From Vitrella brassicaformis CCMP3155 (Eukaryota; Protista; Chromerida), in the NCBI GenBank assembly GCA_001179505.1, contig CDMY01000201.1, positions 105,126 to 169,125 of the forward strand: a DNA stretch of 64,000 nucleotides. Direction: 5' to 3'. A program made the position numbers and the translations under genes. Positions 10,175-18,709 of the stretch are shown here, piece after piece (the stretch's first letter is position 1; each line of letters begins with the position of its first letter). The notes beneath the pieces are model-generated. The model saw only the letters and a program-made list of their open reading frames with translations, was not told the origin of the DNA and did no database searches.

Positions 10175-10877
10175 ATGAATGAGTGAATGAATGATGCGTG
10201 TGTGGGGGTGGGGGTTGGGGGAACGTGAGAGGGGTGAGAGTGACGCGATCGATCGCTTGGATGCTTGTTTGCACCGCACCGTAGGGATGGATGAGGACGC
10301 TCATGAAGGAAGCAAGGGAGGCAGACACACGGACACTGACAGACATGAGTAAACGAATGAAGCCACATATCACACATGGACATCAACACGCACACGCACA
10401 CGAAGGCCATGTACTGGGTGGGTCGGTCGGTCCAACAGCCAAGTAGGCTTCCCCCGCCCGTCCCCCTCTCCCGCAGCATCGATATGGATGTGCTGTGCAG
10501 AGGGGGTGTGGTGCGGGCAGGGCTACATGACATGGGGGGGTGTGGGGGTCTGTCTGTCTGTCTGTCTGTCAGTCCTTCTGTCTTTTGGTCGGTGTGTCAT
10601 TTGTCCGTGTGTGTCATGGCGTGGCGTGCACTGCACCCGTGGGTGGCTGTACACACGAGACTCCACATGAGTCGGTCTTGGGGGTAGGGATGGGGGTGGG
10701 ACTGGGGCGGTGAAGCTGTCCGTCACACGAACGGACTCTGCCTTCGGTCAACTCTGCACACACATACACACACATACACACACACATACACACATCCACA
10801 GCAGCAGCCTCCCTCCCCCCCCTCCCCCCCACCCCCCCACCCCACACACACGCACCTTTATTGCTGTGTTTATGTGT

Positions 10878-13672
10878 TCATGTCTTGGCTAGGTTGAGTG
10901 TGGGGTCGGCGAGGTCGGTCACGAGCGGCCGCTGTGCCAGCATGAGGGGCGGGATCTGCTCGATGGTGTACATGGCCGAGGCGGGGATCACCTTGTGCAC
11001 AGCCATCTCGTTCATGAAGGACTCGATCAACTCCACACCCTGCACACCATGTACCAAACACACACACACGCCATCATGCTGACCATCCATCCATCCATCC
11101 GTCCACCTGCTGCAGTGTTTGGTAGCCGGACTGCTCGTAGCAGTGGACGGCGATGGTCTCCACCAGACGAGCAGACAACCCGCGCCACTCAGACGAACTG
11201 ACAGACAGTGCACAAACAACCAGCCACGGGTCGGATGCACCATGTCTCTCTCTCTCTCTCTCTTTCTGTCTGTGTGTGCGTGTTTGTGTCTCATTGAGCG
11301 GTGCGCTGTGCTGACCCGAGGGCACACCGCACCACAGACTTGACGATGTCGGGCTGGCGGACGAACAACTTGGCCTACAGGGAAATGGGGTATAATACGC
11401 GGGATGGGTGTGCTGTGTCTCACCCTCCTACCTGAGCGATGAGCAGCCCCGGTCGGTAGAAGTCCGCCAGAGCCCGCTCGGCCTCAAACATACCCTGGAG
11501 GGCAGTACACACACGACATCCTTCGCTGCGCCGCGCCCTCTCTGTCTCACTGCAAACTGTATAGCCAGGTGCTTAGGTGCGTCTGAACCTGCAGTGTGTC
11601 TTGGTAGTTCATGACGCAGCTCCAGAAGCACGCCGTCACGGGGCAACCCTCAACCTATACACACATCCACCCCACCACTGCAGGCTATGTGTGTGGGGGG
11701 CGGATGCGCAGCGCATCCATAAGTACTGACTGTGAATTGTAGGTATGGCGATTTGACGGCCACCGAGTCGGCGTGCAGCTCCTTCGACTGCATGAGCTGC
11801 ACGGCAGCCGGGCCCAACAACTTGGCTACATCCTACACACACACACACACGCACCTCTTTGTCTCTCCCCGTGTGTGTGGCGTCATCGTGTGTGCGTGTC
11901 ACGTCACATGGATAGGGTGCATGATTTCCGATGTGATGAAGACGAGTCGGATGTGGGTGTCGTGTCCGATGATGGCCGTCTTCTTGGCGAATGACCCGCA
12001 CTCCAACGTGTCCACTATGTGCACTGGCAGACTCGCGAAACACTCCAAACAACTCTACACACCACACCACCACAGGAGAGCAAGACAGCATGGCTGGATG
12101 GGGGTGTGGGTGTGTGTTGGTACCTTGACGATGCGCTCGATTTTCTGGCGGATGGCCTCTTCGAATGAGGGCGACCACAGACGCTCATGCTGCCAGATGG
12201 GAGGAGGTGAATTGGTGGGTTGTGTGCCCATCCATCCATCCATCCACCGATTACCATTTTGTAGAGTGCGAGTTCTCTGTCGGCATCGGTAGTCTGCGGA
12301 TACAACACCCCGATCTGCACACAGCACAAGACAACACAACACAACACAACCACATCCACCGTCCATCAAACACGCACACGAAATGCTCTCACACATGGTG
12401 TTTGTTTCTTCTTCCATCAGATGCACCTGTGGGGAGTCTCCCGTCCCAACGCCCTTCTGCTGGCCGCCGGCAGAGCCACCCTTGGCAGCACCCACACCAA
12501 CAACACCGCCAACCACAGAGCTACGCACCATCCCGCCCTTACCCTCACCCTCACACACACCCACACCCATACCCACACCCCGCTCCCCACCACCACACAC
12601 AACTCCTGCACACACACACACACGCACACACAAACAATTCATCCACACGCAGCCGTGAGTGTGTCTCCCCCTCCCTCCGCTCTCATCTCGGGGGGCCCAC
12701 ACCGACCCTTCTGCTCATGCGTCGTGTCCACGGCTGCCAGGTCGAGCGGCTCGAGGGAGGGGCCGTGCGTCTGCTGCCGACTGGGACCGGCAGCTGATGC
12801 TGATGTTGACGCAGACGCAGCCCCAGCCTGGGCCGGTGCGGATGAGGTGGACTTGCGGCCGGGCTTCTTATTGGCGGAGTTGGTGGCGGTGCTCTTCTTC
12901 TTGTTATTGCCGTTGCTGTTGCGGGGCTGCATGGGGGGCTTCACCGGGTGCACCTCGCCGTCAGACGACACACGCAGGCTGCAGACCAACACACAGAGAG
13001 AGAGGCCACACACATGGATGGGGTGTGGTGTGGTGCGCTAGTCGCGACAAGGTGTGGTTCGTTGTATGTGCACTATACTGTTTGCAGTTGCGCGAGATGT
13101 ACGTGGGCAAACTGACACCACACACACACAGATGGATGGATGGATGGATGGATGGATCCACAGGGGTAAAGGAAGACCGTTCCCTCCCTGCCTCACCTCT
13201 CATCGATAAGCGATGAGATGGTGCGGTCGAACTTGTCCGAGAAGCGGCCGCGGAGGCTCGACAGCGACATGCTGCCACCCTCAGACCCAACGATCCGCTC
13301 CAACTCAACGCCCACGTTGAACGGCACGATACCAAAACCTACACACCACGCCACAAACCACACCATTGCAAACACACAAATGGACGGACGAATGCATCCA
13401 CATTGCCCATGGCATTGCAGCCGCCGCCGCTGCCGCTGCCGCTGCCTACCTTCAGGTACGAGCTCTACGACCTTCTTGCCAGCTCCGAGATCTTCCACCA
13501 TGAGTAGCTCCCCCTTGTCGACCGCCATGCTCTGCAGCAGGGAGCCGAAGTCCTCCGCCGAGGGCGGTGTGAGGCCGAACTGGCGCGTCCACATGGGTCC
13601 CAGCTGTGAGATGGGCGTGGCGCCGCTCTCCAGCAGCAACCACTCCAGGCGATTTTTCACCAACGACGCCAT
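10878..13672 (-). CDS. Two N-terminal LOTUS/OST-HTH-like winged helices fused to a 2'-5'-oligoadenylate-synthetase-fold (Pol-beta NTase) domain with degenerate catalytic residues
   Basis: Spliced translation gives SPSFEEAIRQKIERIVK|SCLECFASLPVHIVDTLECGSFAKKTAIIGHDTHIRLVFI, LFVRQPDIVKSVVRCALG|SSEWRGLSARLVETIAVHCYEQSG and RPLVTDLADPTLNLAKT. These are colinear with remembered OAS1 motifs (GGSSGKGT..GRSDADLVVF; FLKQRPTKLKSLIRLVK; YALELLTVYAWERG; RPVILDPADPTGNLG). The N-terminal segments GATPISQLGPMWTRQFG and GGSMSLSSLRGRFSDKF resemble LOTUS. Confidence 0.75.
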
Positions 13673-13907
13673 CGCAGGGGAGGGGAAGGGGGGAGGGGAG
13701 GAGGGGAGGGGGAGAGAATTGGATGAGAACGGGCGGCCGAGGAGCGATGCAGGACGTCGTGGCTTTCGAGGGGGAGCCTCAGGCATGTAAACGCATCGGC
13801 TGTAAACAAAGGTCGGCTCTTGTCTTACAGTGATAGTAATCAATCCACATTGCTGTACGACAGCGCCTAAATGAACGCATCACCCCGCTGGTATCCCGCC
13901 TATTGCT

Positions 13908-15893: not shown

Positions 15894-18709
15894 TGGCAAC
15901 GAACGGTACAGCAGGATTCGCGAGCACACCCGGCAGCGGCTACAAGAAGCGCAAGATGGAGGAGCCTCCCCCCGGCAGACTCGAGGAGGTGCGACGGCTG
16001 ATCTCACCTCTCTCAAAGGACCAACTCATCGACATACTCGCACGGGCCGCATCCGTCCACGACGATGTGTACAAGGAGGCCGAGGCTATCGTTTCAGAAA
16101 GCCCAGCCAGCAGGAGGCTCATGGTACGTATGGTCAGGTGGCACACCATATCAAACCATGCCACACACAACACAAGGTATTTCATACCTTCTTCTTCTTC
16201 TTCTTCTCCTTCTTCTCATTGTGTGTCTTTATTTGTTGTATGTCCGTCCCGTCCGTGTGTGTGTGTGTGTGTGTGTGTGTGATACATACCGTCAGATTCG
16301 CAATGTTGCGTTCAGCACGACGGACGAGTCGTTCAACAATCTGATCAAGACGTACGGCGAGGTGGACGATGCCGTGCTGGTGCGCGAGAGGGACGGCCGG
16401 TCCAAGGGCTTCGGCTTCGTCACCTACAAGGACCTCACATCAGTCAACCGCATCCTCAAGGACACCGTCCAGCTCGACGGACGGGAGCTGCTCATCAAAC
16501 TCGCCGCAGACCCATATGGATCCAACGCAAGTCGGTGGCGGCACACACGCCTGCACGTGCCTGTGTCTGTGTCTGTGTCTGTGTTGTGTGATGTGTTGTG
16601 TGGTGGTTGGTGCTATCTGCAGAGACTCCGAATGAGGGCAAGAAGAAGCTGTTCATTCGGAATCTGAGCGACAAGACGACCAAGGACTCGCTGGCCAACG
16701 CGTTCAGCCAGTTCGGCGACATAGAGGAAACCGTCATCGTACAAGACGTGCACGGAAAGTGAGTGAGCACACCACACACACAGATGACATCGGCCCTCCC
16801 ATTTCATGCCATTTGTGTGGACGCTGTGATTGATGTCTGGCCTGGCAGGTCGAAGGGTTATGGTTTTGTGGTGTACAGTCGCCCGGAGGACGCCATCCGG
16901 GCCGTGCAGCAACCACAGAGGATCGTAGATGGTCAGTCAGCACACTCACACACGAACCACTTACCACACCACACCACACCACACACAATCCTCAGCCCCA
17001 CACGGAGTGAGTGTACCCATCTTTCCTGTGTTGCGTGTGTGCGTTGGTGCATCCATCGATCAGGTCGTATGACGTTTGTGAGTTTCGCGGCGCTGGGCAA
17101 GAACGACCGTCACGTCCATGGTGGCGGCCCCGGCGCGCCCCACTTCGGCGGCGGCAGTCCAGGCGCCCCCCTCTCGTCAGGTGGATACTCACCCCTGCAC
17201 TACTACCCCTATGCACAGCACCGACACACAGCGGCCATGCAAGGCCACATGGCCGCCGCTGCCATGGCCTACCATCGCTACCCCACACACCCTCACACCA
17301 TGCACCCAAGGGCCACAGGGCCGCCCGGCTTCCCCTACCAGCCACATCAGCCGGGTGGGTACGGCTACCCGCAGTACCCCCACCCACACCAGTCGGGTGG
17401 CGACCACTCGCCATACGCCAAGGCCCACCCCCAGCCGCCCATCCACCACTCATCGGCCTACCGCACATACGGCGCATACCTCGCCCAGCCCATGCCGCCC
17501 CCGGAGCACATGCGTGGCCGATTCGGGGGCCTCGCCGCGCCGCAGTACGGCCAGACGGGCGCCAGCGCGTCGCCCGGCGGTCGGGGAGGGGGCGGGACGG
17601 GCCAGGCCGGGTCGCCTGACACGAGGCGGGGCGGGAGGAACGCTCCCGTGCCACCGCCAGGCCAGCCCACCGGGCCGGGATCGCCGTACGCGACGCAGCA
17701 CAACGGGACCCATTACAATGGACACACAGGTGCGCAAAGGGGCGGAGTGAGTGAGGGACACGGGATGGGAACCGGTAGATAGATAGGGTAGCCGTCGGTG
17801 GGTGCATAGAGATAGTGGCGTGCCGTATGACTCGTGCGTCCGATCGACCGTACGGCTGATGGATTGGATGTGGCCTGGCCGCGTTGTCTGTGTGTGTGGT
17901 TTGTCTGTGTGTCCGTCTGGTTTTGTGTGTTTGTTTGTGTGGTCTGGTTGTAGTGTGGGTGGCTGTGGCTGTGGCTGCATCGGCATGGGTGACGTGATGG
18001 CGTGGATGGCGTGGCTGGCGTATGGATGACCTGACCACACAACTTGACGGCAACTAGAAGAAGCAAGGGAGGGCGGGCTTGGGGGAGGGGACCGGCAATA
18101 CCTCCACACACCTCACCCCACCTCACCACATCCATCCATCCATCCATCCATCCACACACATGACATTCCATCAACCTGTATCGTGACACACGTGTATGCG
18201 ATGCTGATGTTGCCTGCCTGCCTACCTGCCTCTCCCCCCCCTCCCTCCCTGCGTCTCATCTTCTCTCCCCCCTCTGCCTGGTGTTTGTGTGTGCTGTCGG
18301 TAGGAGCGGCGATGGGCGTTGCGATGGGTGGCCACTCGCCCGGCATGAGCATGATGGGGCCTCTGCAGGGCATGGGCTACTACAACTCGAGCGGCGCGGC
18401 GGCCAACGGCACGGCGGGTCTGACGTCGCACCAGATGGCGGGCGGGGGGCAGATGGGCGCCCACCACACGCAGCACGGCGGCATGGCGGCCGCGCACTAC
18501 GGCCATGCAGGCCAGATGGGGCAGCAGGTGGGCAGCATGGGGCAGCAGGGCCAGGTCGGGCAGATGCCTGGACCACCACCACCCTACTACCAACAACAAC
18601 AGCAGGTACGCATCGCATCAAACACATGGTGAGGGAGAGAGAGGAGGTCCTTCTATGCCTTCCTTCGTGTGTGGTGTGTTTGTGTTAGGCAGCTGGGTAC
18701 CCAAGGTAG
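15894..18709 (+). CDS. Tandem-RRM RNA-binding protein (similar to plant UBP1-associated protein 2) with Gly/Pro/His/Tyr/Gln-rich tail; start codon uncertain
   Basis: LISPLSKDQLIDIL N-terminal helix. RRM1 has RNP1 RSKGFGFVTY; RRM2 has KKLFIRNLS and K|SKGYGFVVY. Low-complexity tail ends AAGYPR*. Confidence 0.88.

Follow-up and report, generated by a model that had tools for sequence, protein, structure and literature searches.

A spliced gene of the alga Vitrella brassicaformis predicted to join LOTUS-like winged helices to a degenerate OAS-like domain

The gene described here lies on the minus strand of a 64,000-nucleotide (nt) stretch of the Vitrella brassicaformis CCMP3155 genome (GenBank assembly GCA_001179505.1, contig CDMY01000201.1, positions 105,126 to 169,125), referred to as the window, whose coordinates are used throughout. 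Vitrella is a single-celled alga and kin of the malaria parasites. The locus holds a genuine gene of a Vitrella-type chromerid alga that is transcribed, spliced and selectively constrained. It encodes a protein of 554 amino acids (aa), in which N-terminal winged-helix domains, plausibly of LOTUS type, are followed by a linker and by a domain that most likely has an OAS-type fold and has likely lost canonical catalysis.

Gene structure, transcription and conservation

The gene model was assembled from consecutive short coding segments, separated by GT..AG introns, on the minus strand of positions 10700-13800. It comprises 14 exons with a coding sequence (CDS) of 1665 nt, running from an ATG at 13672 to a TGA at 10878-10880 without internal stop codons, and all 13 introns are of the GT..AG type (Table 1). 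An initial model of 13 exons was already in frame from ATG to TGA, and a micro-exon was then added from RNA contigs. The C-terminal domain is encoded by nine small exons (20-53 aa), phase 0 for most, with RNA-backed junctions, which agrees with the eight or more small in-phase exons seen by the first-pass annotation of this DNA. The strings ECGSFAKKTAIIGHDTHIRLVF, PVTACF and RPLVTDLADPTLNL, which the first-pass annotation had quoted, are all present in this nine-exon part.

Public sequencing runs were aligned to the window, one of them presumed to be RNA (X1; this label is a guess) and two of them DNA (X3 and X5). Contigs of X1 skip exactly the predicted introns, which read CT..AC on the plus strand; contigs of X3 and X5 are unspliced. 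Spliced X1 contigs back 12 of the 13 junctions. Some joints are given directly in X1 (11197/11316, 11374/11432, 11654/11731 and 12054/12124), and the junctions of introns 1, 5, 7, 9 and 13 were deduced from record arithmetic together with loose ends that match the adjacent exon. The micro-exon at 13079-13111 was found through X1 record 4, in which the joint 12978->13079 carries 33 unplaced letters. It had been missed by the first-pass annotation and completes the second winged-helix domain; the splicing seen in X1 keeps the proposed reading frame. In the Vitrella genome, ab initio models may often overlook micro-exons of about 33 nt in such genes.

The last exon was compared with 1.84 billion proteins in an exhaustive HMMER search, which gave a single true match, a 73-aa open reading frame (ORF) fragment (P0002); two other matches were rejected as spurious repeat proteins. 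The fragment, which carries P547A relative to exon 14, lies on contig k147_954255 (2915 bp; hereafter L001) of the ENA metagenome assembly ERZ893784. L001 is colinear with window positions 13381-10502 at 87% identity. Its exons 2-14 are 91-100% identical to those of the window with no frame-breaking gaps, exon 5 having an in-frame indel of 6 nt, and its introns, in which indels are numerous, are 53-87% identical. L001 retains every GT..AG splice site, and its micro-exon matches at 100% identity. For aa 284-554, the C-terminal domain, the ratio of non-synonymous to synonymous substitution rates (dN/dS) between the window and L001 is 0.096 (15 synonymous and 5 non-synonymous changes). The linker has a ratio of 0.28, and the region of the second winged helix one of 0.53, the latter on small counts. 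With every exon in frame, every splice site preserved and most substitutions synonymous in L001, the gene model is more than a chance arrangement. With exons about 96% identical overall, L001 represents a second Vitrella-like lineage in public environmental data. Prokaryote-style gene calls on it are mostly in the wrong frame; one of 228 aa, at 1024-1710, does not share the frame of the true exons.

No stop-free stretch covers more than one of the nine C-terminal exons, either in the window or in L001. A search of metagenome contigs for the junction pattern gave no spliced transcript, a related-locus search with the last exon gave no match, and tblastn of the gene model against the 64-kb window gave no paralog.

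The introns are short (57-118 nt), and several of them are CA-rich in the 5' half and TG-rich in the 3' half; the C+A fraction falls from 0.85 to 0.20 in intron 7 and from 0.70 to 0.26 in intron 8. Runs of (GGAT)n occur in introns 2, 6 and 13. The CDS is flanked at both ends by long polypurine/polypyrimidine ((GGGGA)-like) and (CA)n tracts (13673-13720 and 10780-10860), at which the X1 RNA contigs end. A gene for an RRM RNA-binding protein lies about 2.4 kb upstream of the gene start on the opposite strand, where its pieces at 16065-17779 (plus strand) match Pfam RRM_1 at E=6.5e-11 and 1.7e-4.

Table 1. Position and support of the coding region and its exons in the window. Identities are to L001; records and joints are those of run X1.
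Feature	Position	Strand	Support
Whole coding region	10878..13672	-	Sequence model, spliced RNA contigs, ortholog L001
Exon 1, aa 1-75, winged-helix LOTUS-like domain 1	13450..13672	-	
Exon 2, aa 75-122, first part of LOTUS-like domain 2	13197..13338	-	RNA contig; 95% identity
Exon 3, 33-nt micro-exon, aa 122-133, LPTYISRNCK	13079..13111	-	X1 joint; 100% identity and flanking GT..AG in L001
Exon 4, aa 133-224	12707..12978	-	RNA contig 12723-12978; 96% identity
Exon 5, aa 224-283, Gly/Val-rich low-complexity linker	12427..12605	-	3' part in X1 record 3
Exon 6, aa 284-303	12255..12314	-	60 letters between 12190 and 12427 (X1 record 3); 98% identity
Exon 7, aa 304-325, predicted N-terminal helix of nucleotidyltransferase-like domain	12124..12189	-	Joint 12054->12124; 100% identity
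Exon 8, aa 326-374, GS-motif exon	11908..12054	-	RNA contig
Exon 9, aa 375-408	11731..11832	-	RNA contig; loose end at 11907 = 11818-11832
Exon 10, aa 409-430, strand CPVTACF	11589..11654	-	Joint 11654->11731; identical in L001
Exon 11, aa 431-451	11432..11494	-	Loose end at 11588 = 11478-11494; joint 11374->11432
Exon 12, aa 452-471	11316..11374	-	Joints 11197->11316 and 11374->11432
Exon 13, aa 471-501, LSARLVETIAVHCYEQSG helix	11107..11197	-	RNA contig record 1
Exon 14, aa 502-554 and stop, C-terminal motif RPLVTDLADPTLNL at 10890-10931	10878..11039	-	RNA contig record 1

The N-terminal winged-helix domains

Domain 1 (exon 1, aa 1-74) was modelled with AlphaFold2 on the single sequence, and the model is a winged helix of three helices and a beta-hairpin (H2-16, H21-32, H39-53, E55-63 and E66-73) with a mean predicted local distance difference test score (pLDDT) of 79. 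In a Foldseek comparison with the PDB the best two-way TM-score was found for the LOTUS domain of Oskar (5a49; 0.69/0.68, root-mean-square deviation 2.5). The LOTUS domains of TDRD7 (3rco) and MARF1 (5yad) were also in the list, in which no match reached E<=0.001. An Atlas feature search with the N-terminal read-through gave OST-HTH/LOTUS clusters at scores of 0.85-0.88, to be taken as a lead only, and an ESM-Atlas shape search with domain 1 gave generic winged helices only.

Two results count against a LOTUS assignment. The model of domain 1 fits the winged helices of PadR, Fur, ScpB and Cdc6 as well as it fits LOTUS, and the Pfam OST-HTH profile (PF12872) matched neither exon 1, exon 2 nor the 158-aa N-terminal read-through at E<=10. 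NCBIfam likewise gave no match for the N-terminal exons, and a protein database search with the 158-aa read-through gave no homolog among proteins of 87-276 aa. Three exons (2, 3 and 4) contribute to domain 2 (about aa 76-147), which by eye has the same winged-helix pattern as domain 1; a comparison of the two domains gave no significant internal repeat. Domain 2 ends within exon 4 (about aa 147, window 12936), and the rest of this exon encodes a Ser/Ala/Lys-rich linker with the basic patch NNKKKSTATNSANKKPGRK. The first-pass annotation had proposed a LOTUS-like pair of winged helices. For domain 1 the winged helix is borne out by the AlphaFold2 model, and the LOTUS label is tied with generic winged helices; membership in the LOTUS family is plausible, short of established.

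The C-terminal OAS-like domain and its catalytic positions

The C-terminal part of about 270 aa would most likely adopt an OAS-type Pol-beta nucleotidyltransferase fold, judged from the order of its motifs, the language-model neighbours of the GS exon and a non-significant OASL match. A putative N-terminal helix is followed by ..VHIVDTLECGSFAKKTAIIGHDTHIRLVF (G-S, K and strand), YLQFTVEGCPVTACF (hairpin), MFEAERALADFYRPGLL..AKLFVRQ, LSARLVETIAVHCYEQSG and RPLVTDLADPTLNL. In exon 13, the helix LSARLVETIAVHCYEQSG is similar to a helix of the OAS C-lobe, '..LELL.VYA'. The motif RPLVTDLADPTLNL near the C-terminus aligns to RPIILDPADPTLNV of OASL and follows the OAS-superfamily pattern RP-h-h-h-D-P-A-D-P-T-x-N-h. 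When the last exon was searched against the PDB with phmmer, the only match was to residues 296-315 of human OASL (4xq7), close to the end of the OAS domain of that protein, where ERPIILDPADPTLNVAE aligns to QRPLVTDLADPTLNLAK of the algal protein; at E=1.6 this match is non-significant. The algal protein is also similar to the blocks GGSVGKGTAIAGA..SDAELVFF, IRLLKWWRDQQ and LELMAVYSA of alveolate OAS-like proteins in the supplementary alignments of PMC10732462.

Language-model neighbours of the 49-aa GS exon carried the families NTP_transf_2, SMODS, MTPAP-like, PAP_NTPase, DncV-like and DZF_N at 0.85-0.88, the last of these only at rank 28. All neighbours that bear a family are Pol-beta nucleotidyltransferases; the scores are below 0.9 and serve as leads only. 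DZF gave no Pfam match on single exons at E<=10. A cGAS/Mab21 assignment was rejected, as no Pfam match on single exons, no Mab21 family among the language-model neighbours of the GS exon and no zinc-ribbon insertion in the sequence was seen.

The most serious competitor of an OAS-type domain is a Pol-beta nucleotidyltransferase fold of another family (non-canonical poly(A)/uridylyl transferase-like, DZF-like or Mab21-like), in which the OAS-like motifs would be superfamily-wide features. The range of families among the GS-exon neighbours, in which OAS is not preferred, speaks for it, as does the lack of a Pfam OAS1_C match from single exons; PAP-associated domains, too, typically show the 'h.DP....N' motif and the 'LS..L..h.V' helix. 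However, the last exon finds in the PDB only an OAS-family protein, with which it shares the string ADPTLN, and the GS..K.TAI.G block suits the alveolate OAS-like alignments. In addition, a Vitrella protein with a LOTUS-like N-terminus has OAS1_C matches in the tables of PMC10732462. On balance we regard a non-OAS family as rather unlikely.

At the catalytic positions, G345-S346 (11992-11997) is present. The strand that follows reads H-D357-T-H359-I-R-L-V-F, with D357-T358-H359 at 11953-11961, and holds at most one acidic residue, in departure from the D-x-D/E of OAS. An ungapped count from the GS motif puts the D-x-D on T358-H359-I360, and anchoring on the alveolate OAS-like block 'KGTAI.G..D.E' puts it on D357-T358-H359. 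The first-pass annotation had placed it on H-I-R, which is probably wrong: this register is the least likely and requires a further shift beyond both alignments, and D357-T-H359 is the more likely equivalent. The strand of the third Asp (..EFDVLP.. in OAS1) reads G-C-P-V-T415-A-C-F-W and holds no acid. T415 (11634-11636) stands at the expected place of the third catalytic Asp in a register based on motif alignment, and the earlier equation of PVTACF with the third acidic position was retained. L001 has D-P-H in place of D357-T358-H359 and the same CPVTACF.

In every register that we tried, at most one of the three catalytic acids (D357) is left. Since this holds in any register, and since T415 occupies the third position in L001 as well, canonical catalysis is likely lost. 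The domain had earlier been called catalytically dead, with the reservation that acids might appear under a better alignment. The other registers recover D357 at most, so that the first Asp may remain and at least two of the three acids are gone.

A less probable alternative is that the domain still works as a nucleotidyltransferase, through a non-canonical metal site made up of D357, H359 and a further ligand, and would make an oligonucleotide or nucleotide signal once the LOTUS-like domains bind RNA. G345-S346 and K349/K350 are present, D357 and H359 are kept in L001, and the domain is under strong purifying selection (omega 0.10), all of which would suit an enzyme. Known Pol-beta nucleotidyltransferases, however, need a carboxylate triad. 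The second and third catalytic positions lack an acid in any register, and the residue between D357 and H359 switches from T to P in L001. We therefore consider activity of this kind improbable.

A putative adaptor and its relation to known systems

With a probability of roughly 0.6, we favour the reading that the protein is a non-catalytic RNA-binding adaptor, built of two LOTUS-type winged helices, a linker and an inactive OAS-like domain. At the N-terminus, aa 1-74 and about 76-147 would each form a minimal winged helix of LOTUS/OST-HTH type. Next would come about 135 aa of disordered linker, in which a basic patch precedes a Gly/Val-rich stretch. The predicted OAS-type domain of about 270 aa keeps the G-S and 'RP..D.ADPT.N' motifs and appears to have lost at least two of three metal-binding carboxylates. 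OASL and the DZF of NF45/NF90 are examples of nucleotidyltransferase-fold domains that are inactive and serve as RNA-binding or dimerising scaffolds, and the pseudo-OAS domain may likewise be an RNA-binding and/or nucleotide-binding or dimerising module. LOTUS domains are otherwise familiar from germ-granule and RNA-decay proteins. They bind G-rich and G-quadruplex RNA (PMC7498356), and extended LOTUS domains recruit and activate Vasa-type DEAD-box helicases (PMC8331183). The LOTUS-like domains of the algal protein might act as binding sites for G-rich or structured RNA or as a docking site for a DEAD-box helicase. On this view the protein would make no 2'-5'-oligoadenylate, but would tether RNAs, or regulate them, within ribonucleoprotein assemblies. 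An antiviral, small-RNA or immune role would be speculation.

Beside the results already named for domain 1 and for the OASL match, several observations weigh against the adaptor. Pfam, NCBIfam and PADLOC gave no match on single exons even at E<=10, the Pfam profiles including OAS1_C (PF10421) and those of nucleotidyltransferases; such searches with exons of 19-53 aa are underpowered. The GS exon and exon 13 had no match in the PDB with phmmer, and an Atlas feature search with the last exon gave no informative match. D357 and H359 could still bind metal. Finally, the junction of exons 4 and 5 (12707|12605), which creates the fusion, is the only one without an X1 RNA contig; it sits in low-complexity sequence that is masked in the alignment, and the contigs stop there.

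The lack of profile matches would also suit a C-terminal part that has no nucleotidyltransferase fold; its GS dipeptide and short motif near the C-terminus would then be a chance likeness in a lineage-specific domain. Single exons gave no significant profile or sequence match, the last exon found no relatives beyond the 73-aa fragment among the 1.84 billion proteins, and the language-model scores stay below 0.9. Against this, the order and spacing of several motifs are as expected, the ten best family-bearing neighbours of the GS exon all belong to one superfamily, and the single PDB match falls in the expected family at the expected position. We hold a chance likeness to be quite unlikely.

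As to the junction at 12707|12605, its 101-nt intron differs between the window and L001 by three frameshifting indels (1, 1 and 2 nt), and reading through it meets a stop in both. Given these indels and stops in the intron, and a spliced frame that is open in both species, the fusion of the N- and C-terminal halves is well supported, though no RNA contig spans it. Least probable of all is that the LOTUS-like and nucleotidyltransferase-like parts are separate gene products, with the transcript ending or starting between 12525 and 12722: no X1 RNA contig covers this interval and two contigs stop on either side, but the gap is low-complexity, masked and assembly-breaking, the DNA contigs are masked there too, X1 contig depth is alike on both sides (8.4 vs 9.7-11), about 200 nt are too small for a terminator and a promoter, and a conserved GT..AG intron joins the halves in frame in both species despite independent indels.

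If the protein is an adaptor, a conserved, expressed and degenerate OAS-like domain next to LOTUS-type winged helices would suggest that the alveolate OAS fold can be an RNA-binding scaffold. We know of nothing on the function of the OAS superfamily outside animals, where RNase L is absent, and the gene offers a testable entry into this biology through RNA binding, helicase partners and localisation. The gene is apparently missing from public protein sets, in which only the 73-aa ORF fragment was found; exon fragmentation conceals such genes.

Among known proteins, human OASL (PDB 4xq7) has an inactive OAS-type domain, with the motif order kept, fused to non-catalytic accessory domains, as the algal protein probably does. 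These are two C-terminal ubiquitin-like domains in OASL and N-terminal winged helices in the algal protein. Between the GS and the C-terminal motif, the algal domain is about 60-70 aa shorter than OAS, by OAS1 numbering. The DZF of NF45/NF90 (ILF2/ILF3) is likewise an inactive nucleotidyltransferase-fold scaffold in RNA-binding proteins. DZF proteins pair with double-stranded RNA-binding or zinc-finger domains and heterodimerise, whereas the algal C-terminal motif is OAS-like. On the N-terminal side, the LOTUS hub proteins (Oskar, TDRD5/7, MARF1 and MIP-1/2 of C. elegans) also have small winged helices, often paired, next to disordered regions. In contrast to these, the model of domain 1 has no C-terminal helix extension of the 'extended LOTUS' kind, and the partner domain is nucleotidyltransferase-like where the hub proteins have Tudor, NYN or OSK domains.

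Proteins of the OAS superfamily occur in 8 of 12 eukaryotic supergroups and are thought to reach back to early eukaryotes (PMC10732462). The algal protein resembles the GGS.GKGTAI.G..DAE, IRL.KWW and LELL..YA blocks of alveolate OAS-like proteins from dinoflagellates, Oxyrrhis, Hematodinium and Filipodium (Culbertson and Levin 2023, PMC10732462). Many of these proteins are likely active, since they keep D-A-E and the third acidic residue; the algal protein keeps neither. The first-pass annotation did not recognise the fusion. It is undescribed in the literature, in that full-text searches gave no paper connecting LOTUS domains with OAS, and the main text of PMC10732462 does not discuss LOTUS/OST-HTH architectures or catalytic integrity. 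It is not unique, however. The supplements of the same paper hold Hematodinium OAS-like proteins with ubiquitin and weak OST-HTH matches, and the Vitrella protein EP00390_P012849 with OAS1_C matches at residues 661-860, a degenerate 'ADALIVLM' strand and a LOTUS-like N-terminus. Like our protein, EP00390_P012849 combines a LOTUS-like N-terminus and Gly-rich linkers of low complexity with an OAS-like C-terminal domain in which the D-x-D is degenerate. It differs in being longer than 860 aa and in having Pfam OAS1_C matches, and it was not retrieved by the last exon of the 554-aa protein, which is too divergent. With the 554-aa gene, this architecture, present in public data yet undescribed, gains a second member that is shorter and more divergent. 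Tentatively, myzozoan alveolates (chromerids, dinoflagellates and relatives) may possess a lineage-specific family of LOTUS and pseudo-OAS proteins, with at least two paralogs in Vitrella, in which an ancient OAS-type RNA sensor could have become a non-catalytic adaptor of RNA granules or RNA surveillance, or alternatively acquired a D-x-H site with novel chemistry; the former course would run parallel to that of OASL and NF90 in animals.

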